This document shows, one piece after another, positions 6,701 to 18,478 of a DNA stretch of 64,000 bases; the stretch's first letter is position 1, and every line of letters starts with the position of its first letter. Source of the DNA: Oopsacas minuta (lineage: Eukaryota; Animalia; Porifera); contig JAKMXF010000340.1 of the NCBI GenBank assembly GCA_024704765.1, forward strand, positions 159,911-223,910. The letters are read 5' to 3'. The notes under the pieces are model-generated. The model did no database searches. It was given only the letters and a program-made list of their open reading frames with translations, and was not told the origin of the DNA. The translations under genes and the position numbers were made by a program.

Positions 6701-9700
6701 ATTAAGAGTTTCGTCTATGGGAAAGGAGGAATTCGCCTAAGGACAGATTACACATTTGCGTTTTTGCATCCTTGCGGATGTGTTTGTTTCCCCATAATAC
6801 ATATCGAACTCATTGGGTTTTCACCTTTTGCTTATCTGTATTTTTTGCCAATTTTCTGATGCATTTGTAGGCAAAAAAATTTTTGACTATATTTATTCCA
6901 TATGGATAGCAAATGTTTCGTTTGTCATTGAAGGCCCTCGACATAACTAACCTGACCAAGATGAAGTATAGCTGCAATTATCTTGAAAACTTCTAATTGT
7001 TCTTTCTCATGGAAACCAACTGAATTAAATGCTTCCCTTGTGTTACGGTACATTTCCTTCTCAACAACTCCTTTTAAAGTAAACGGCTCTCCACCATCAG
7101 CTAGATAGTTGTATTGCTTTACATTAGATTGTAGCTGTAATTGCTTCAGTAGTGTGGCATCTTGTGAACCAAGAAGTCTATAAGGGCAAATGTGTTCATA
7201 AAGTGAAGTCGAACACGAAGAATCGAGCTGGAGCCTAATCTCCAAATTTATGGGTCGCGAAATATAGTAGAACCGGAAAAATATCCGGTTTCCACTGTAT
7301 TGAGTTCAAAAACAGGGCTGACGGTATGTTCTGCGTCTGAATACATTTGCCTTTAAGCCCCCAGGCAGCTTACCGATGGACAGAATTGCAGAATCTTGTT
7401 TAAGTTCACTAGTCGGTACTTATATGCTTTGCTCGGCCAACGAAAATGGTAATTTAGCATTCTCACCCCCGAGGGCCTGGCCGACAGCTTCGGCTAGCCC
7501 TCCATCGGCCGATTCTTAGAGGGAATAATGTCTATACACAGCAAATACGTAGCTCACCCCCTGTAGCTAAACCGCGACGTCGCCCTTGCTTTTTAGCCAG
7601 CCATGAATATAAGATACTACAATAATAAACCTGTAGAAAATATGAAAGTTTCTATCTCCTTTTTGTTGACTGACAACTCTATCTTTCTCCAGCATGTAAA
7701 CAGTAACTGTCCCACCAACTGGTTGGCTTAGAAAATCAAAATCTATACTGGTGCACTTCAGGAATCGTGACGAATTATTGTTTCGTTTAGTGCGTGCGTT
7801 ACCAAAAGCTTCCAAAAGAGTGCTCGAATGGATGAGTAGGTTTTTTACTCGCTCTGCCTCTGTGGGTATAGATGATAGTGTTATCTTTGTCAGGTAGAGC
7901 ATCATACATTTTAGGATCTCGGTTTTCCCTAAAAATTTTTTTGGTCAAAGTTTATGATCGTTTTGAGCTATAATTAAGACATCACCCACTCAAATTTTTC
8001 AATTAATTTGATGTTAAATCAAACCTAATTTTTCAAAATATGCGCGTACAGCCTTTCGCTGTCACACATCTTCAATTTCAATAGGTTATCTCCCTAAAGG
8101 ACATGAGCTAAAGCGTGTGCCAAGCTTGTATGTGATATACAAACGTCCGAATAAATACAGAAGTCTGAAGTACAAAAAACCTAATTGTAATATAATATTT
8201 TCTATATTTTAAATACATCATTAATTCCAACAGGGGTAAGACAGGAGAGTGTAATGTAGCATATGACAATACAAATGCTATGAAAATAGCAGAAATACGG
8301 GCACAAGTCAAAAATTACATTCAATTATTAAATACAAACAGTTTCTCAAATAGAGCTGAATACAAAATTAATAAAAAATAACTAACCATCAAACAAATAG
8401 TAATAATAGATAAACAAATAAAATGTATAAATAATATTTTATGGTTGTCTAACACCTCATTTTGAAGCACAAGTTTTGCCACAAAAATCATAATAGCCTT
8501 TGCCATCTTCCTTCTTCCTTTTCTGTCGAGTACAACCATGTCCTTTACATTTATTGTCATTGTCCACCGTATGACCACCTCTTCCCCCTCCAGCCCCAGG
8601 GGAGCCATATGGCATGCCAGTTAGCGGCTGATTGTAACTGTATGGGCTTTGTTGATAGTAATACTGAGGATTGGCTGCCATTGGATTATAGCATTGGCCA
8701 GGTAGTTGCTGACCTGGCATACCGGGATATTGACCTTGCATTCCCGGATGTTGACCTTGCATTCCAGGATATTGACTTTGCATTCCGGGATGTTGACCTT
8801 GCATTCCAGGATATTGACTTTGCATTCCGGGATGTTGACCTTGCATTCCAGGATATTGACTTTGCATTCCGGGATGTTGACCTTGCATTCCAGGATATTG
8901 ACTTTGCATTCCGGGATGTTGACCTTGCATACCGGGATATTGACTTTGCATTCCGGGATGTTGACCTTGCATACCGGGATGTTGACCTTGCATTCCGGGA
9001 TGTTGACCTTGCATACCGGGATGTTGACCTTGCATACCGGGATGTTGACCTTGCATTCCAGGATGTTGACTTTGCATACCGGCATACTGACCTTGACCTT
9101 GCATTCCAGGATGTTGATCTTGCGTACCTGTAGGTTGAATTTGTATACTGGAAGATTGTAACCCGTACTCTTGCTGATCCTGTGGTTGGACTTGAGGTTG
9201 GGGTGTTGCTGTTTGTTCCTGAATTTTGCCCGGAATATGACCTGATTTTAAATCCTTTATGCGCTGTTTAACTTTGTCCATTTCACCCTGTATTTTCTCA
9301 TAACCTATATGCTTATCAGCGGCGCAATCACAATAATCGCAAGTAGTATACTGACAATCATTAGAAGTGTTATAACCGTGACATTTATTACACGCACACG
9401 CACCCAATACCACAATTTCGGTGTGATAAATCGGTTTATGATCACAGTAATCGCAGGCTAAAGAGGAACCCTCTCGAGGTGGGCTGTACTCATAGCACTC
9501 TTCACAAATGGCACATCTTCCGCGTTTCGTCCCAAACTTGTCCTTGCCCATTAGCTTGTATGTATATGCTATCAGTGGTATTTAAAAAACTCGTTGAATA
9601 ATAATAATATTCAAAATATTCTACAGTCAACTCCCATTAAATCGAACAGGGAATTATGGGTATACCCGCTTATATGGAAGTCTTAAATTCTACAAATATG

Positions 9701-12700
9701 GTCCCAAACATTCAAAGTTACCATATATTCTATCGGTTATATAGAACTCGGCATATATCGAAGAAATTATCGTGGTCCCTTGAGCTTCGATATCACAGGA
9801 GTTGACTGTTAAGAATATGGTGCACAGAAAAAATTGAAATCCAAATAAATAGTATGCGCCAAAACGTGGATTATAATGCATATAGTTAAATAAGCTATAT
9901 ATAGATATCATATATCAGTGGTTTATGATATAGGAGTACTATACAGACTATGGAAATGTTATGGCACAGCTAACACAGTGTAATCTTTCAGAATATGATT
10001 TAACCCTTTTTCAAAAGGGTATTGTATTCATGGTTATCTGCGTGTGCCCACCAAATCATATATATTAATGTATTACAAGTGCGGCTATAGTACGCCTCTT
10101 GTTACAGGTATAATTAAGCAAATGAAACGAACCAATGAGGGCTGCGTCTCGAGCCCAATAGCCCGTCAAATCTTCATAACATTCTGCCCCAAAAAATTAA
10201 CCTTGAATGAAGTTCAAGTTCTTCTTAAAATAAATGAAGTTATGATTTTTAAATAATAACAAAATTACTAATAATACATGCGAATAAATAGCATACCAAT
10301 TAAAAAGCTTGTAAATTAGCCTCAACTTTCATATCCACTACATATATAGATCCAGCATAATTAACAGCTATGCCTTGTGGTTCAAATAAATCTCCAGGAT
10401 TTTCTTTACCCTTCCTCCCTACAACCTGTACCAAATCCCCTTGTGGACTGAATACACGTATTTGATGGGAGCCTGAATCAGATATCAGAATATTACTACT
10501 GGCATCCAAACAAAAGTATTTCGCATCTAAAACCATTGTCTCAGTCACGATATGACGGATTAACACTCCTTCATGCGTGAAGCTTTGTAATGGAAATTGA
10601 GATTTATGGAATAGAACGTAGATCGCTGTTGCCTCCACACGGATATCCCTTGTTTGTGTGTCACTGTTATTCGTCGCTTTTAACGTGAATTTTCTTTTGA
10701 ATTTCAAATTTGAAATACGCACTACAACTATTTGTAAGTTCAAAAGGTCACAAACGTAAAGGTATTTGTTGCCTTTCGAATCAATTCCGCTCAGTGAAAA
10801 TTCGAATTCAGTTTTCCCAATAATTTCTCCAGTGTATTTATTGATTTTGTTCAATTGGTGTAGGCCGCTGGTAATGAAGAGAAATTGGCCACTAATACAG
10901 ATCCTACGGGGTAGTAGTACCTTCTTCTGGCAAAAAGTTTCGAGAAAAATACCGTTTTCATCATAAACTTGAATTCGGTCGTTAAGGCAGTCTGCAATGT
11001 AAAGATTTTGTGTTTCATTATCGACAGCAATACCTTTCGCGTGGTTCAGATCTTCAGGACCATTTCCGCGTTTCGATTGATGCCAGTTAGGTTTCATTTT
11101 AAAGAATTTCCCTGGCGACTTGACTTCGATTATATGACAAATATTCTGTAATGAATCTTGGAAAGAAAGTTCATCCCAATGCACAATTAAGTCAGGCACA
11201 TCAACTGTGAAATTTTGGTATGCTTTTTTCTCAGTTTCAAGTGTGGAAATTATCTTTGCATATGCAGGTTTTAAATCAGATTGATTTAAACTATCGAAAA
11301 CGGTATTTTTAGCGATTTCAAGCTCGTTTATATTAATAATCCGATCGGCGAAAAGTTTCTCATAATGCTCATAAATAATATCAAGATCGCGAAATTTTTC
11401 CATTTCACTCAGGGATAAAAGATGGTGTAATTTCTCATATTTTTTCTTCAATTCCAGTTTGACAATTTCTATTTTCTCCCTCAAATCATCAAGATATTTA
11501 TTTTCGATTGGAATATTAAGCAAGCTAGGTAGTCCTGATGCTGGTAACGAATTTCTATTCTTATCTACCTGAAGGAGATTCGGCATACTTTGGCACGAAA
11601 GAGAATGAGATAATTCACACGAAGGCGCTATTTCAAACAAACAGGATCTTTCCGCAGAAGTTATCTTGTCTATCGACATATCAACTGGATTTCCTGTAAA
11701 TTGAAACTGTTTTTCACTTTCAGCAAAAGTTGGCGAATCCAATTGTATCAAATTTTCCTCTTTAACAAGTGTTTTCACCCTTTCATATTCAACATGTACT
11801 CGCTCCCATCCAACATGCTTTTCAGCATCACAAGCACAATAATCACATTGAAAGTATTGAAATTCATTCTTTGACGAATAACCATGACAGTGCCCACATT
11901 TACAAAGGCCTAAAGTCACAACTTTCACATGACACTTTCTATTATGTGCACAACATTGACAAGTATCATCCTCTGCCTGTTGTTCATATTCTTCACATTC
12001 TCCACATGCAACGCATCTACCACGTTTCGTTCCTTGTGCGTCTTTCCCCATTTATTTGATCAAAATTTATAAAGTTTTCGAAATTTATAGCCAGCAAAAA
12101 TGAAGATAAAAACAGATGGAATATACTGGTAGCAAACGTAGAGACAAATAAAATGAAGAGTATTAAGCGTATTTGAGAGCCTACCATCAAAGAAGTACAC
12201 AATATCATATGACAAACAAATAGTAGGCTATTCTACCAACTAGTAATCAAAGCATTCGGATTTTTAAATATTGCAATATCTTCTGGTATATTATAAATGG
12301 TTTATGCTCCATGGCGGAGATTTGTAGTACTTGACCTACCTATTCCATATATTACCATTACCCCTATGCGATAGTTTCATTTTGTAGGCTATAAAATGGC
12401 GAGAACCGTACAAATTCACCGTATATTATTTCTGTATTAATTCAATGGCTGAAGAATCCACTAAGCTAAATAAACAAGAATTGGACATACTACGCGATAA
12501 TATTCAAAATGCGAAAGATGAAGTTCGAGGAAAATTTGAAGATATTCACAGACGTTTAGAAACATTAGAAAGCGAAATAAACCACGAATTGGATGTTATA
12601 TTCGATCACTATGAAAGATTAATAATTCGACGTTCGCGGAATATAAGTCAACTCGACATCGCGAGAAGTAGATTATACTCAAGTCTGCAACACAACGATC

Positions 12701-15700
12701 TAAATGAGGCACTGGATAAACTATTAAAAGCGGTTGATTCTGAGAAAAAAACGTTTGTTGAAGAAGTAATTGATGTACCAAACGTTCTCGTTACTTGGGA
12801 CGAAATTTACTTGGAAGAAACTCTACAGAAACTTTGCAAAATAAACGAACTCAAATATTCAAAGGAATTTTTGAAGACAACATCATTATGGCATCAATCG
12901 AAACGTGGAAACGGGGAGGACGATTTGAACTATCCAAGAGGGATAGCATACGATGTGAAAGCACATAATCTCTACGTAGCTGATTGTCTAAACGATCGCA
13001 TCCAGGTTTATGATGAAAAAGGGAATGTGATTGATTCGATATGTAAAAACACAGTGAAACTTCCACGTAGGATTTGTATTACAGAAAATTTCCTGTTTGT
13101 TACAAGTGATCTACACCAACTGAATAAGATTAATAAGAAAACAGGCGAAGTACTTGAAAAAGAAAAATTCCAATACTTGTTAAGCGGAATCGATTCATTT
13201 AGGGAGAAATATATATACGCGTGTGACCTAATGGATCTACAAATAATTGTAATGCGTATTTCAAACTTGAGTGTGAAGAGGAAATTCACGTTAAAAGCGA
13301 CGAAAAACAGTGACACACAAACAAGGGATATCCGTGTGGAGGCAACAGCGATCTACGTTCTATTCCATAAATCTCAATTTCCATTACAAAGCTTCACGCA
13401 TGAAGGAGTGTTAATCCGTCATATCGTGACTGAGACAATGGTTTTAGATGCGAAATACTTTTGTTTGGATGCAAGCAGTAATTTTTTTGATATCTGATTC
13501 AAGCTCCCATCAAATACGTGTATTCAGTCCACAAGGGAATTTGGTACAAGTTGTAGGGAGGAAGGGTAAAGAAAATCCTGGAGATTTATTTGAACCACAA
13601 GGCATAGCTGTTAATTATAACGATTCTAGCATATTTGTGGTGGATAGGAAAGTTGATAAAATTCTGCAAGCTTTTTAATAATTGTAATTTGTGGAACTTT
13701 TTGTATAATGAATAAGGTATTTTGTACATTATTAAATCATTAAAGTATTTGACAATTTTTGGGATCAGAGTTTCGACAATCATAAGCAGAGGCATCGCGT
13801 GGATTGTAGTGAATAATTCTAAGTTGGGATTTACAACTCACAAGTGATCTACGTCGTCAAATGATATGACATTATTGTATTTGACTCAGAAAGTTCAAAT
13901 ACAGTAAAACCTTCAGTTAGTGAAGACCAGAGGAACCAGCCAAAATGTTCATATACGAGAAGTGTTCACTTTCTTGACATTGTGTTTAGCAATTGAAGAC
14001 ATTTGGGACCGAGAAAAGGTGTACATCTTTTGGAGATGTTCACTCCTTAGAGGTGTACACTTTTAGAAGTTTTACTGTATTTCTTATAGCAGGAGTAAGT
14101 GGCGCTCCTGAAATTATAGTATTCTTTAAAATATTCAAATAAACTACAGATAGAGCAGGGGGTCATTTAACAACATTCTTTGAGGCAATTTTTAACCTCA
14201 TAACGAGACATTTCCCGACATAATACAGTAGACTCCGGTTAATTGGGAAAACAGCTGAATCTGGACAGTTACTCACTATAGCTTCTCAGGTATTCTATGG
14301 CCAAATCCGATCATTTATAGACAAAAGAATTCCAGCATCTTGTTCATATTATACAAAATTTCAGAAAAATGGTAAGGAATTTGTTCATATCATTGGCAGT
14401 AAGTGTTTTGCATCAAAAGCATTCTATTATCTTATAGAATGTCAGGAAATTATTCAAATACATTCAAAACCTGCAAGACTTTCAAAATATACCTAAATTA
14501 GTGAATATTGTACATTCATGTAATAAAGTAGACGTTAATTAGTAATTGCAAATATTTGTCGGTTTGATTCAAGTTGATTTTTACCAATCCGCCTACGAAA
14601 ATGAAAGTTTTGTCATATTGCAATTGTTCCAATGATAGTGAAACATATCGCATAATATTACATGACATCCGCTTAACCGAACCGCGAGGTGAGATTCCAA
14701 AATAGCATTAGATTTTGCTTAAGTCAACGGTCGGTAAATGAAAACTTGTTCAATATATCGAATGTACGAGAAAGGATCCATACGAGATTCCGAATAGTAT
14801 TTCCATACATATACATAATGTAATACGTATAATGTTGCCAGTTCAAGAACATGATATATGGATTATGGATTTGGCTTTTGTAAGAACTCTTGACTTTACA
14901 TTAATTTTAGCTTTTGGCAAGAACTTGGCATGAACATGACACGAACTTTGTGAACACATCATCTAGCAAGACCAACCAAGTAGCAACACTGAATAATCAA
15001 TAATCATAGCGGAAGTTACCTCCAAAGACTAGCAAATCAAGAAATATTCAAAGGTTCTAAGAATGCTTAATAAAATGTAACTTGTTCATTTGATAATGTA
15101 CACCTAAGGGCACATAAAAGTTACAAAACATCATGAAATTCGTTTGAAATATAATTTGTAATCAACAGAGCTATGCTACGTGAGCCAAAATGATATTAGT
15201 AACATGTGTGATAACGCTTAAGTGTTCAGGAAATTATTTACAATCCCAAGTTAATCTTTACTAACCAACTGAGCTAAGAAATTAGGGAAACTGCAGACTT
15301 CTCAATTCCTTCGATTGAAATCTTAAAATCATAGCTAATTGGTACTAAAATTCCAATCACTCAGAAAAGTAGATAATCATATGAATTGCATATTTTGGAA
15401 AAATTAAAATGAATATTACTATTACATTACGGATGCTAAAACTCAAAATAGATTACTACTCAATTTTGTAATATACATTACAAATAGTATATCTTAGAAA
15501 AACCACAAATCAACTTCTGTGCGGTTAATATTACCAAATCAATTTTAGTAGACTTTTGGAACAATAATAATATTATCCTACAAATATCCATATTAGCAAA
15601 GAAAAGATAAAATTGAATTTTAAAATCTTGTTAGACATTTAAAATGTCAAAATCGAATTCTACGCCCCGCTTTACCCCTATTTAACAAGTGGAAGCTAAT

Positions 15701-18478
15701 CTCTAGGATAATTTGAAATGTTCACCAAAAGGTGTGAAAATATGATTAATCATATGATAAATTCAGTGTAATAAGTGTATATATATTTAATAGGATGTAC
15801 TGAATAGAATTACAATCTACATCAATACAAATACAAGATACAGTGCTAATTAAATTACATACAGGCAAGAACTTGGCATGAACCGTCAAAGGGTTTAAAA
15901 ATATACACATTAGAAATTTCCAAATGTCAGGTGTACAAACTAGATGTCATTACGAGTATACATGCCAAATTTGGTGTTTTCATCTATAAAGGTGTGAACA
16001 ACAGAGCCAAAATAGAAGCCCGAGAATACTCTTTTATCGTAATACTACTTAACTACATGAAAATCGGGAATTCCATCCATGGTGATATAACAGCCAAGGA
16101 AAATACTGTCAATGCTGGTTATAAGAACATCATCGGGAACTGGACATAATGTTCTTATAACCGGCATGTCGTATATAAGAACATGTTCTTATAACCGGTG
16201 TTCTTATATCCGGCATCTGCTGTATTCGATATTCCATTATGTTATAACAAAATATTGAAAAATTCATATTGTTTGAATATAAAATTAGAAAAGATTTCCT
16301 CTAAGCATGCATTATTACTTACAAACCTACGTAGTTATAGTGTAAATTGAGATATCCTTATGATAACTGTAGAAAATGGATTATTAATTATAGAAATGTG
16401 TAATCCAATGGTTGAGGAAATTCTCCGGAACTATAAATGATGATTCCATGTAGAGTTTATAATACAAGATTATAAATCAATTTTCATTATTCAATGATTC
16501 AGCAATAGGAAGTTCAAGTTACAATGCATAAATGTTCCTGGAATAAAGTACAGACGTAAAGGATGAGATAAGAAAATGGATAATTTCAAAATGGGTGTAT
16601 TAGAAACTGATTTGTCCTGAATAAACCCTGAAGTTTATTTTATTCTTGGTCAATTTGATCTATACATTTAGTGATATATCAAATGTTGTGCCCTCTTCCA
16701 GTTTCCTAGAAATCATAGCCATGGATGAAAAACAACCACATTAGTATCGTATACAGATACGTAAGTAAGTCAGTGGCGGTCCCAGGGTAGGGGAAACGGA
16801 GCATTTTCCCAGGATTTGAAAATCTTGGCCCCTGCCTTGCCCCGGGCTATGCAAAATCCTGGGACAGCCCCTGAAGTCGTAGCATCGTCACGTCAGGGAA
16901 TAATCTATAAAAGAGGCGGAATTATAAATTACTCTCAAGACAATGCACACTACAAATCCAATTATCAAACACGATAATTACTTTCATAAATTATTACTCT
17001 GCCCATTTGGTTCTATGAAATATTCAAATATTTACAAACAACTTCTACATTAATAAATTCATATATCAAAGCTTTCGATTGTATAACTTCTAACCGAATA
17101 TATTAGTACAGTAATGTTAGCACATAATCGTATTGACATAATAGCACTGAAATTTGACTAATAAGCTTGATACTATGCAGGGCCGTTGAGAGCGCGAGCG
17201 GACCCCCTCTGATATTTTGTTCCGTTATCGTGAAGTGAATAAACTAAACGCAAACCATCGCATTCGTATTATATATATATATATTAAAAGTTAAACAAAA
17301 AGGTTGTCAGCCTATTTACGCGTGCCTGTCGTTTGGATCGTATCCCGTAAACTGAGTTAGTTATTGAAAAAAATTATAATTGATACAAAGTAAGTCAGGA
17401 CTGGGTTTCTAAGAAGGATTAAATAACAAAGGTATTACTCTGTCCAGCGATGTCTTTATTTTCCCCTTTACTTGTCTACTTAATGCATGCAGCCAATAAA
17501 GCCCATACATACCTTCACAGACAGAATTTCTCGGGCCCTGGGGTAATTACCCCGCCGACTCCCCCCTCTCGACAGCCCTGATACTATGCATGTATGTATA
17601 ATATAGAAATTATAGTGGCGACATGTTGGCATATGTTTTTGAAATATGGGGAGGAGTACAGGTCCTATTTGAGGGTCTGGGAGTGCTTAGTACCAAATTG
17701 GACCATTGGACATATACTTTCTCCTGTATTATAGAATTTATCAAAAAATTTTAAACTTAGAAAATCAATCGAAACTGCATTAGAACATTCCTTACCAGAT
17801 CCAGACTCTCCAGTAGCAACAATACAATGATCATCACGTGTTTTAGTAACTAATTGATAAGCAGCATCAGCTATAGAGAACGGATGTGGAGCATTCTGGA
17901 ATAGCTCACTGCCCTTGTATGTCTCGATTACGTCATCACCGAATATCTTCATCTCCTATATAGAGAGATAAGCTATACGTAATTCACCGATCAATCGAGG
18001 TTAATATCACCAAAGTAATTAATGTTACTGTAGATGATTATTTGATATTGAACCATGGATGGTGAATTTAGTATACTATATGGTGTATCAAATGTCCCGT
18101 CGAATCAAGCGAGCAGTGGTTCAAAGTGACCATATTTAAAACGGAGTTTCCTATACATCAATCACGTTCTAGCTCTGACCGCATTTTGTCACGTGTTAAC
18201 GAAACTACTATTTATCGCGAGATTCCCCTAAAAATCATGACTTAATTCCTACTTCTCCCCAGACAGCTAAAAGTTAAATAGTTATAATTCTAATAATATC
18301 CTTCACAAACACATACCTCGTACGGATTTACAGCAATGAGAGACTCTCCAATATAAGAGTATATCTGTTCAGATTCATAACGCATCTTTAAGTTGAGTAT
18401 GAATGTGTCAAGTGTCAGGTTATCAACCTGAGTGAAGTCGGGTAACCCTTCTGGCATCTTTCGACGTCCTGCCTTCAT
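723..18478 (-). CDS. MYO1D: Unconventional class I myosin, myosin-Id/Ig-like; multi-exon, C-terminal tail continues beyond window start
   Basis: Exons (GT-AG, phase-consistent): 18317-18478, 17796-17955, 7631-7928, 6952-7177, 6489-6673, 5361-5614, 2703-2998, 2008-2318, 1220-1535, 723-899. Motifs: VNPYE, GESGSG|KTE, EAFGNARTKRNNNSSRF, LEKDRVV..RNFHIFY, RDTLAK, DIYGFE, YVRCIRPN, IQ-like IQTIWRK, and MRDLGYSIEWP resembling the Myo1d post-IQ segment. A possible further acceptor lies at position 8. Confidence 0.9.
1010..1204. mobile_element. Tc1/mariner-pogo-type MITE (CAGTCAACTCC TIR family)
   Basis: CAGCCAACACCCGCTATATC ... ATATAACGGAGTTGACTG followed by TA; same TIR as 9624-9808. Confidence 0.55.
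3690..4805 (+). CDS. Cation diffusion facilitator zinc transporter (SLC30A2/3/4/8-like), intronless, antisense inside a myosin intron
   Basis: 371-aa ORF with 6 TM segments: SSLAVLTDSAHMLSD (TM2 H..D), YGYHRAEVLGA, NIRAALIHCIGD (TM5 H..D), ADPICTFIFS, LHDLRIW, TIQVE, N-terminal CKCH and C-terminal CELC. Confidence 0.93.
   Translation: MEDVYMNREAGKLFSSNNYKLKYVTGSCQEIERIEHPKKNQNLCKCHSNDENWKSNKTREALIKLTIAAFLAIIFTIAEAVGGYISSSLAVLTDSAHMLSDFFGFIVSLVSLVISKRKPSRKMHYGYHRAEVLGAVFSVIIIWIVTALLVYEAIQRVIHLDYEIDADVMLITATAGLYINVLLSLVLQIPLPKFLLEKETFETRKTTPKVENINIRAALIHCIGDIVQSMGVIIAGIIIRFRPDLKIADPICTFIFSILVTITTLNILRDAVHILMEGAPGNIKVEEVKSFLLNIPGVKRLHDLRIWNVNSTRICLSVHLAVDFCGKYDALLERVINDLKERYNIDYTTIQVEYYNQEEYFNCELCTSQDK
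5853..6352 (+). pseudogene. Degraded ORF with a PHD-finger-like remnant, possibly the C-terminus of a decayed transposase
   Basis: An acidic short ORF is followed by ENID*VSCDKCGRWYHILC..GWFWEFC* with in-frame stops (TAG where W is expected). Confidence 0.45.
8457..9551 (-). CDS. Uncharacterised 364-aa protein: tandem Cys/His zinc-like module, helix, (G/S)Q(H/Y)PGMQ repeat, C-terminal Cys knuckle
   Basis: Intronless ATG-to-stop ORF. The N-terminal ~85 aa are clearly homologous to the N-terminus of 10300-12051. The C-terminus is CKGHGC...YDFCGKTCASK. Confidence 0.85.
   Translation of the reverse strand: MGKDKFGTKRGRCAICEECYEYSPPREGSSLACDYCDHKPIYHTEIVVLGACACNKCHGYNTSNDCQYTTCDYCDCAADKHIGYEKIQGEMDKVKQRIKDLKSGHIPGKIQEQTATPQPQVQPQDQQEYGLQSSSIQIQPTGTQDQHPGMQGQGQYAGMQSQHPGMQGQHPGMQGQHPGMQGQHPGMQGQHPGMQGQHPGMQSQYPGMQGQHPGMQSQYPGMQGQHPGMQSQYPGMQGQHPGMQSQYPGMQGQHPGMQSQYPGMQGQHPGMQGQYPGMPGQQLPGQCYNPMAANPQYYYQQSPYSYNQPLTGMPYGSPGAGGGRGGHTVDNDNKCKGHGCTRQKRKKEDGKGYYDFCGKTCASK
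8715..9119. repeat. Coding minisatellite, 21-bp unit, about 19 copies, with a 42-bp higher-order alternation
   Basis: Units such as GCATTCCGGGATGTTGACCTT and GCATTCCAGGATATTGACTTT; translated GQHPGMQ/SQYPGMQ. Confidence 0.95.
9624..9808. mobile_element. Tc1/mariner-pogo-type MITE
   Basis: TIRs CAGTCAACTCC / GGAGTTGACTG, TA on the left flank. Confidence 0.7.
10300..12051 (-). CDS. NHL-repeat (TRIM-NHL-like) protein with an N-terminal tandem Cys/His module and coiled coil
   Basis: 583-aa intronless ORF. NHL signatures: LNHAKGIAVD..LYIADCLNDRIQVYD, ILISDSGSHQIRVF, LFEPQGIAVN..IYVVD. A coiled-coil-like segment lies at about aa 190-290. Confidence 0.9.
   Translation of the reverse strand: MGKDAQGTKRGRCVACGECEEYEQQAEDDTCQCCAHNRKCHVKVVTLGLCKCGHCHGYSSKNEFQYFQCDYCACDAEKHVGWERVHVEYERVKTLVKEENLIQLDSPTFAESEKQFQFTGNPVDMSIDKITSAERSCLFEIAPSCELSHSLSCQSMPNLLQVDKNRNSLPASGLPSLLNIPIENKYLDDLREKIEIVKLELKKKYEKLHHLLSLSEMEKFRDLDIIYEHYEKLFADRIININELEIAKNTVFDSLNQSDLKPAYAKIISTLETEKKAYQNFTVDVPDLIVHWDELSFQDSLQNICHIIEVKSPGKFFKMKPNWHQSKRGNGPEDLNHAKGIAVDNETQNLYIADCLNDRIQVYDENGIFLETFCQKKVLLPRRICISGQFLFITSGLHQLNKINKYTGEIIGKTEFEFSLSGIDSKGNKYLYVCDLLNLQIVVVRISNLKFKRKFTLKATNNSDTQTRDIRVEATAIYVLFHKSQFPLQSFTHEGVLIRHIVTETMVLDAKYFCLDASSNILISDSGSHQIRVFSPQGDLVQVVGRKGKENPGDLFEPQGIAVNYAGSIYVVDMKVEANLQAF
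12445..13678 (+). CDS. Coiled-coil plus NHL-repeat protein, paralog of 10300-12051; +1 frameshift at the T7 run 13482-13488 (pseudogene or sequence error)
   Basis: ORFs 12445-13497 and 13448-13678 together align with the paralog through to ...LQAF*. The paralog has 6 nt (TATTCT) where this copy has 7 T. Confidence 0.8.
16106..16222. mobile_element. Small TA-flanked MITE
   Basis: Imperfect TIR CTGTCAATGCTGGTTATAAGAAC / GTTCTTATATCCGGCATCTGCTG, TA on both sides, internal GTTCTTATAACCGG repeats. Confidence 0.55.
16771..16873. mobile_element. Short hAT-like MITE
   Basis: TIR CAGTGGCGGTCCCAGG / CCTGGGACAGCCCCTG; second copy at 635-715. Confidence 0.6.
17178..17580. mobile_element. Non-autonomous hAT element with a perfect 8-bp target-site duplication
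   Basis: TIR CAGGGCCGTTGAGAG / CTCTCGACAGCCCTG; ATACTATG at 17170-17177 and 17581-17588. Confidence 0.85.

Follow-up and report, generated by a model that had tools for sequence, protein, structure and literature searches.

The window analysed here is the whole 64,000-nucleotide stretch of the genome of the glass sponge Oopsacas minuta (assembly GCA_024704765.1, contig JAKMXF010000340.1, positions 159,911 to 223,910). Two adjacent genes of this window, named A and B, share an N-terminal module of two Cys/His units, here called the head. Behind the head, gene A continues into a low-complexity region and gene B into a helical region with an NHL propeller; a third neighbour, gene C, has a body like that of B. 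Our favoured account is that the head belongs to an unannotated domain family, that B is a chimera of an A-type head and an NHL body, and that the head is a zinc-stabilised docking domain. Taken as a whole, we consider this account probable.

The head module shared by genes A and B

Gene A (8457..9551, minus strand) is an uninterrupted open reading frame (ORF) of 364 amino acids, and gene B (10300..12051, minus strand) is an uninterrupted ORF of 583 amino acids. The head occupies residues 1–87 of A (9291..9551, minus strand) and residues 1–85 of B (11797..12051, minus strand), and the two heads are 47–51% identical. Unit 1 has the pattern C-x2-C-x2-C-x2-Y-x8/10-C-x2-C-x-H-x4-H and unit 2 the pattern C-x-C-x2-C-x2-Y-x10-C-x2-C-x-C-x4-H. 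This spacing, and its presence at the start of two adjacent genes, had been described in an earlier sequence-only reading of the window, with which the ORFs and alignments agree exactly.

BLASTP of A against B gave a single significant segment, residues 1–100 against 1–98, with 47% identity and an expectation value (E) of 3e-27, and the rest of the two proteins was unmatched. The similarity is thus confined to the front of both proteins, and the description of one module on two unrelated bodies was borne out. Searched against all six frames of the genome, the head of B recovered A at E = 2.1e-23.

In the family alignment of 42 modules, ten Cys/His columns were invariant and four more were at least 90% conserved. 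All seven ligand positions were occupied by Cys or His in 48 single units. The family consensus of a unit is [KR]-D-x2-G-x2-R-G-x-C-x(1-4)-C-x(1-2)-C-x2-[YF]-loop-C-x2-C-x-[HC]-x4-H. The units of A and B follow this pattern with seven Cys/His and the aromatic residue, and the D..G..RG arm is missing from their second units. A hidden Markov model (HMM) of the unit gave 35–56 bits for the units of A and B (56.2 and 37.0 bits for those of A), against noise of at most 8.9 bits. When the model was run with filters off over 1930 ORFs and four PET-LIM proteins, family members scored at least 23.6 bits and everything else at most 8.9 bits.

Family members and their range

An exhaustive profile search with the two heads over 1.84 billion representatives returned 67 proteins at E < 1e-3, 21 of them at E < 1e-10. 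An HMM or profile search had been suggested by the sequence-only reading, and its outcome is that the module forms a real family. Judged by these alignments and profiles, the head is a member of a real, conserved family that is absent from current domain libraries. Named members come from the glass sponge Vazella, the demosponge Amphimedon, and the unionid mussels Sinanodonta and Potamilus. Most of the other matches are from ENA or Logan assemblies, for which few taxon names were recovered. A word-index protein search with the head of B retrieved B alone, and the same type of search with the 42-sequence profile retrieved 21 small proteins.

Units were found singly, in tandem as in A and B, or as arrays. 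Many of the matches are proteins of 90–130 amino acids that consist almost of the head only. The Sinanodonta and Potamilus proteins carry six to nine single units, and further proteins have one unit at the N-terminus.

The unit is also not restricted to A and B within O. minuta. The sequence-only reading had seen the module on two genes; both are confirmed as carriers, but at least five genes of the genome contain a unit, three of which were added by the whole-genome scan with the unit HMM. One locus carries a tandem head followed by an MGQ[VA]P repeat (L009 3351-4385, on contig G000:C354, minus strand). Single-unit genes lie on contig G000:C365 (L010 3538-4278, 4567-4932, and 5002-5319, plus strand). 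The C365 genes have Q-rich tails; one has two separated single units, and one has a single unit with a Q-rich tail. The ORF downstream of a single-unit C365 gene contains another Cys-rich segment or knuckle, which is possibly a second exon.

Head-only genes are grouped locally on contigs of some other sponge-type assemblies. Five unit-bearing ORFs were observed in L004/L005 (about 10 kb each) and three in L013 (about 12 kb), and these groups adjoin ORFs with PARP and NADAR domains. A different arrangement was seen at L011 6001-9098 and L012 2250-5347, where a single-unit ORF (MGKDKRGVSRGKC...) is followed by abutting same-strand ORFs of 208, 416, and 289–304 amino acids. These contigs come from two samples, and the arrangement lies near a RAG1-RNase-H-like ORF. 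Together these ORFs may represent a single long, interrupted gene belonging to a mobile element. Transposase was considered as the identity of the ORFs behind the single-unit head and was set aside, as no Pfam family matched them.

Searches for a known domain or fold

Pfam gave no match to the heads of A and B even at E ≤ 10, in line with the sequence-only reading, which had taken the module for something other than a known Pfam domain. When the whole A, B, and C proteins, the heads, the 42 members, and the C-terminal knuckles were searched together, the NHL matches on B and C were observed, plus sub-threshold noise. RING families were absent from A and B at E ≤ 1 and from the heads at E ≤ 10, and neither PET nor LIM was found by Pfam in A or B.

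Two Pfam families came near, with two to three members each, all below the cut-offs and none on the O. minuta proteins. FAM221 (PF14753) matched a unit in 2 of the 42 modules at E values of 0.0016–0.0023, with a best score of 18 bits (P0064) against a cut-off of 25 bits. It gave no match to O. minuta A or B, and no FAM221 gene was found in the O. minuta genome. The zf-FCS family (PF06467, FCS/MYM type) matched 2 of 11 C-terminal knuckles of A-type proteins, with a best E value of 0.0011 (range 0.0011–0.04), below the curated cut-off of 22.4 bits, and the knuckle of gene A itself was not matched by it.

Sequence searches of the PDB with single sequences and with profiles gave nothing significant, and two feature searches of the ESM Atlas returned nothing usable. 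A weak likeness of the head to the zinc ribbon of ribosomal protein eS27 was seen at a non-significant E value of 0.25. The AlphaFold2 model of the head had a predicted local distance difference test score (pLDDT) of 37.5 with two sequences, which is useless, and of 64.8 with 42 sequences. The sequence-only reading had proposed a Foldseek comparison, and this gave no significant match of the head model in the PDB. The nearest shapes, taken from the Atlas and by VIA-align, were rubredoxin-like folds and double zinc ribbons. These predicted and solved shapes resemble the head unit in having two CxxC knuckles; however, all the matches were non-significant (Z of 2.6, template modelling (TM) scores of 0.3–0.5, below 0.5 except for two rows at about 0.5). 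Plain zinc ribbons also lack the three extra invariant ligands of each head unit.

N-myristoylation of the MGKD start was considered and rejected. Most relatives begin with MKD and have no glycine there, and the lysine after Gly2 together with residue 6 does not fit the usual consensus.

Comparison with the cysteine-rich region of Testin and LMCD1

The sequence-only reading had also noted that the spacing recalls the N-terminal cysteine-rich (CR) region of Testin and LMCD1. O. minuta has two PET-LIM genes of Testin/Prickle-like type (contigs C44 and C66), and the N-terminal regions of both proteins contain C-x2-C-x3-C-x2-[FL]-x8-C-x2-C-x-C-x4-H with an upstream D-x-G-R. The resemblance in pattern is therefore present in the same genome: seven Cys/His in the same order, an aromatic residue after the third Cys, the C-x2-C-x-C/H-x4-H ending, and the N-terminal position are common to both. 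The suggestion of a similar spacing stood in this form, and tests for homology failed.

A distant homology of the head unit with the CR region of Testin/LMCD1-type PET-LIM proteins would explain the shared ligand order, the aromatic residue, and the upstream D..GR of both O. minuta proteins. In hhalign, all ligands of the unit and of the CR region came into register (P = 0.0036), but the probability was just 9%. The unit HMM with filters off gave the PET-LIM proteins no score above noise, the whole-genome scan with this model at E ≤ 10 did not return the two PET-LIM genes, and no Testin-like protein was among the 67 matches of the large profile search. The inner spacings also differ, since the gap between the second and third Cys is x3 in the CR region against x1–2 in the head unit, and the loop has a fixed length of 8 residues against 3–26. 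Here the head units never precede PET or LIM, unlike the CR region. Short Cys patterns readily converge, and we consider the homology unlikely. On these comparisons, the likeness to the CR region is a resemblance and not a membership.

Structure of gene B

Gene B consists of the head, a linker, a helical region, and an NHL propeller. The linker (11494..11796, minus strand; about 88 amino acids at about residues 86–186) is specific to B. It is acidic, rich in Ser and Leu, and fast-evolving, and showed no match to A or C. The body, residues 187–583 (10300..11493, minus strand), is of the C type, being 59% identical to gene C and 58% identical to a C-type gene from another glass sponge. NHL was matched by PF01436 at E = 6.6e-10 with 39 bits (cut-off 20). 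A further Pfam propeller match was DUF5128 (PF17170), a six-bladed propeller, with 28.5 bits.

For B and C, the sequence-only reading had proposed a coiled coil followed by NHL, with no module on C. NHL was confirmed by Pfam and C is headless, but the coiled coil was not shown. Residues 187–300 of B are rich in Leu, Glu, Lys, Asp, and Ile, and a crude heptad count equalled that of shuffled sequences.

An orthologue of B (P0009, 558 amino acids) has an identical design. Its head is 49% identical to that of B and retains 14 of the 14 Cys/His, and the head of A is 76% identical across the same two species. Between the two B heads, the nonsynonymous divergence (dN) was 0.35 and the synonymous divergence (dS) about 2.2, which is saturated. 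The linker showed 33% identity with a dN of 0.79. From these values we infer that the head of B has been retained under purifying selection since its origin.

The locus is covered by contigs of four sequencing runs (X1 to X4), none of which is recorded as RNA; one run has a very uneven depth across A, B, and C, as would fit RNA. At position 11536, in the linker of B, an in-frame deletion of 3 nucleotides was observed in the sole covering contig of runs X2 and X3 and was absent from X1 and X4.

Gene C and the NHL family

Gene C (12445..13678, plus strand; ORFs 12445-13497 and 13448-13678) encodes a helical region and an NHL domain detected by Pfam, without the head. Its start aligns with residue 187 of B and onward. 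Genes B and C are placed head-to-head with about 390 bp between their start codons.

The frame of gene C is broken in a T7 run at 13482-13488, and the copy of this run in B is one base shorter. Contigs of run X4 contain a form that is one base shorter at 13482-13488 at about half depth (6673/13172), and the orthologues of gene C are intact, with 410–412 amino acids. Because of the shorter form at half depth and the intact orthologues, gene C is possibly intact: either one or more alleles may have the full frame, or the T7 run may be an assembly error.

An inverted repeat of 134 nucleotides with 97% complementarity connects the 3' ends of B and C (left arm 10357..10490, right arm 13485-13618). 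In a second glass sponge (L006 8036-9268 against 10001-11677), the B-type and C-type proteins hardly differ over their C-terminal 170 or so residues. As the 3' ends are near-identical in each species, B-type and C-type genes appear to exchange sequence within each species.

The gene C protein gave at least 115 matches in the O. minuta genome (743 first-look candidates), mostly at 22–33% identity. All members of this family look intronless, most have open frames of about 400–440 amino acids, and several often lie on one contig; examples are C255:24384-25394, C88:101094-102104, and C312:279448-280452. The published O. minuta genome comprises 365 scaffolds, about 61 Mb, with 36% G+C (PMC10280926), and the paper makes no mention of NHL (PMC10280926). 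For a 61-Mb genome, the family with a helical region and NHL is very large. Identity of the B body is 59% with C and does not exceed 30% with any of the 113 or more remaining matches. The open frame of gene B, with 583 amino acids, is the longest of all, the others having 216–472 amino acids. More than 100 relatives of the B body have no N-terminal zinc domain.

As the sequence-only reading had stated, the module sits where TRIM-NHL proteins carry RING and B-box; B-boxes do occur elsewhere in the genome and none is found in B. Two tandem Cys/His units in front of a helical region and an NHL propeller could make B an ordinary TRIM-NHL protein of the Brat type without RING, with the two units being very divergent B-boxes, and the weak, non-significant Foldseek rows do include RING-type domains. 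However, zf-B_box (PF00643) found no match at E ≤ 10 on the 42 family members, although this model detects 17 B-boxes in other parts of the genome. The usual partners of the head are disordered regions and not a coiled coil with a C-terminal domain, and the headless state of the relatives of the B body does not suit a TRIM-NHL origin either. The ligand spacing of the head does not match the known pattern of either B-box type. We regard divergent B-boxes as extremely improbable.

Structure of gene A

Behind its head, gene A runs into a low-complexity repeat, as the sequence-only reading had reported; Tandem Repeats Finder gave 19.4 copies of a 21-nucleotide repeat encoding (Q/S)(H/Y)PGMQG (8710..9123, minus strand). 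The 220 residues from 101 to 320 contain 57 Gln, 41 Gly, 31 Pro, and 21 Met. The protein ends in a basic knuckle (8457..8588, minus strand), C-x4-C-x16-C-x3-C with a YDFC motif, in which four Cys are invariant in the alignment and the isoelectric point (pI) is 9.4.

Orthologues with the design of gene A were observed in Vazella (P0002, from a transcript assembly), in Amphimedon (XP_019853245.1, P0070), and on contigs of two other glass sponges. The repeats of the A-type orthologues differ and their composition is similar. The head with a disordered region rich in Gln, Pro, Gly, and Met, with or without the basic four-cysteine knuckle, is the commonest design among the longer family members inspected. 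Gene A is the common, older design, and gene B is derived.

One further A-type protein from a transcript (L003 545-1372, P0017) has an extra terminal C-x2-C-x11-C-x2-C. By its spacing this resembles an A20-type finger, and Pfam is silent on it.

Genomic setting and origin of gene B

The cluster lies within a host gene. A myosin-head exon with a LEAFGNARTKRNNNSSRF motif is found just downstream of the cluster (7567..7905, minus strand). Upstream of it, the translation of an ORF at 17665..17952 (minus strand) contains GESGSGK, which we take to be the P-loop motif of a myosin head. As myosin exons occur on both sides, C, B, and A lie inside an intron of about 9.8 kb. The C-B-A cluster of the second glass sponge is also flanked by myosin exons (Myosin_head ORFs), and in a third glass sponge the cluster is beside myosin exons, seen on one side only. 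In this third species, the C-type gene is on the strand of B and A and is not head-to-head with B.

Between A and B, the segment 9588-9955 showed a depth of 10–30 times that of its flanks in all four runs, and many contigs branch off at 9594-9809. This segment is probably a dispersed repeat.

In the tree of heads, the A and B heads of glass sponges formed one clade (84/67), in which the two heads of B proteins with NHL paired (97/91) beside the A-type heads. The placement of the heads, the C-like body, and the longest frame in the family together indicate that B is an A-type head on a member of the neighbouring family. B would have arisen in the glass-sponge lineage by the joining of a duplicated A-type 5' end to a gene with a helical region and NHL propeller. 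These comparisons clearly show the domain shuffling and allow a direction to be assigned, with B as a lineage-specific fusion.

The identity of the A and B heads within a species was 50% in O. minuta, 45% in the second glass sponge, and 88% in the third, and between species it was 42–55%. The B-type gene of the third glass sponge (L014 10001-11074, 357 amino acids) has the head and the helical part and no NHL propeller. The first 110 codons of this B-like gene are close to the neighbouring A (dN of 0.068, dS of 0.048). As silent sites are alike too, the likeness of the A and B heads in the third species points to a recent gene conversion rather than to selection.

These values bear on the direct docking of A and B proposed in the sequence-only reading, in which the two heads would bind each other and the NHL sensor would recruit or seed the neighbouring disordered, condensate-forming adaptor. 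In its favour, A and B are same-strand neighbours, and three glass sponges have retained the cluster; A has a long region rich in Gln, Gly, Pro, and Met, the B body comes from a family with at least 115 matches, and the two heads of the third species are 88% identical. However, the within-species identity in O. minuta and the second species is not above that between species, so there is no sign of co-evolution. The likeness in the third species fits gene conversion without selection for matching, and the B copy there has lost its NHL part. A-type and head-only genes are also common where no partner with head and NHL was seen, for example in Amphimedon. Such a docking would follow the logic of the fungal NWD2/HET-S gene pairs (PMC3321046), and we hold it to be quite unlikely.

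Proposed role of the head

In the favoured account, each unit would form a putative zinc-stabilised pair of CxxC knuckles of rubredoxin-like or zinc-ribbon-like type, and the three further ligands of the unit would build a second metal site. The head may act as a docking domain for a protein partner and not as an enzyme or a DNA reader; this step is proposed with low confidence. In A-type proteins, the head would tether the sticky disordered region and the basic knuckle. In B, the NHL recognition propeller would be carried by the head to this partner or to the same location.

Docking was preferred over DNA binding because the heads are mildly acidic (pI 5.7–6.2). They also have a basic N-terminal arm, K-D-x2-G-x2-R-G-K/R, which is conserved before the first Cys and would suit a nucleic-acid-binding zinc domain like that of some transposases and regulators; in that case B would attach its NHL propeller to DNA or RNA. 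The basic knuckle at the end of A-type proteins, with its weak FCS/MYM likeness, could serve the same purpose, as could the single-unit ORF that heads a same-strand ORF run of about 1000 amino acids on two contigs from two samples near the RAG1-RNase-H-like ORF. However, the pI of the whole heads does not suit such binding, and no fold match to DNA-binding zinc domains was obtained. Pfam finds nothing in the long ORFs that follow the single-unit head, which leaves the word transposase unproven for them. We judge nucleic-acid binding to be distinctly improbable, lower than the docking of A and B.

Several observations weigh against the favoured account. With its seven ligands, a unit is not consistent with two ordinary four-ligand zinc sites, and the head model is of low confidence with no significant fold match. 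The single-unit heads in front of ORF runs of about 1000 amino acids, at a repeat-like locus, could mean nucleic-acid binding. The O. minuta contigs that cover B come from runs not recorded as RNA. Since few members carry a taxon name, the family may range more widely than 'sponges plus mussels'.

Significance and comparison with known systems

The main value of the locus is as a lead for annotation and domain discovery. It is a clear and datable instance of a new gene design, in which the front of one gene stands on the body of a neighbour, and this design has persisted since at least two glass-sponge species diverged. A further gain is a small Cys/His domain family missing from current domain libraries, whose members come mostly from sponge assemblies that have no annotation. 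Should the head turn out to be a docking domain, B would offer a first way to learn what the sponge's large NHL propeller family connects to. If the link to Testin and LMCD1 were true, it would give the barely studied CR region its first evolutionary context.

Among known systems, B is comparable to the TRIM-NHL proteins (RING/B-box, coiled coil, and NHL; Brat, LIN-41, TRIM71) in having a pair of Cys/His units, a helical region, and a six-bladed NHL propeller. It differs from them in that Pfam finds neither RING nor B-box in B, the head comes from another family, whose usual partner is a disordered region, and the body derives from a family with at least 115 matches that lacks the head.

The head could also be read more boldly as an animal zinc domain that has not been described before, perhaps the stand-alone source of the Testin/LMCD1 CR region, and as a homotypic adaptor that would wire an NHL-family member to the disordered, polymer-forming protein of its neighbour. 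We consider this reading very improbable. If it were true, the locus would parallel, in an animal, the receptor-plus-neighbour logic of the fungal NWD2/HET-S pairs. In those pairs, a receptor and its next-door gene share a short signalling element (PMC3321046). The likeness, which is one of analogy only, is that a repeat-domain receptor and its neighbour share a short N-terminal element; the difference is that the fungal pairs share an amyloid motif and have a STAND/NLR receptor (PMC3321046), whereas here a predicted folded Cys/His domain is carried by an NHL protein.

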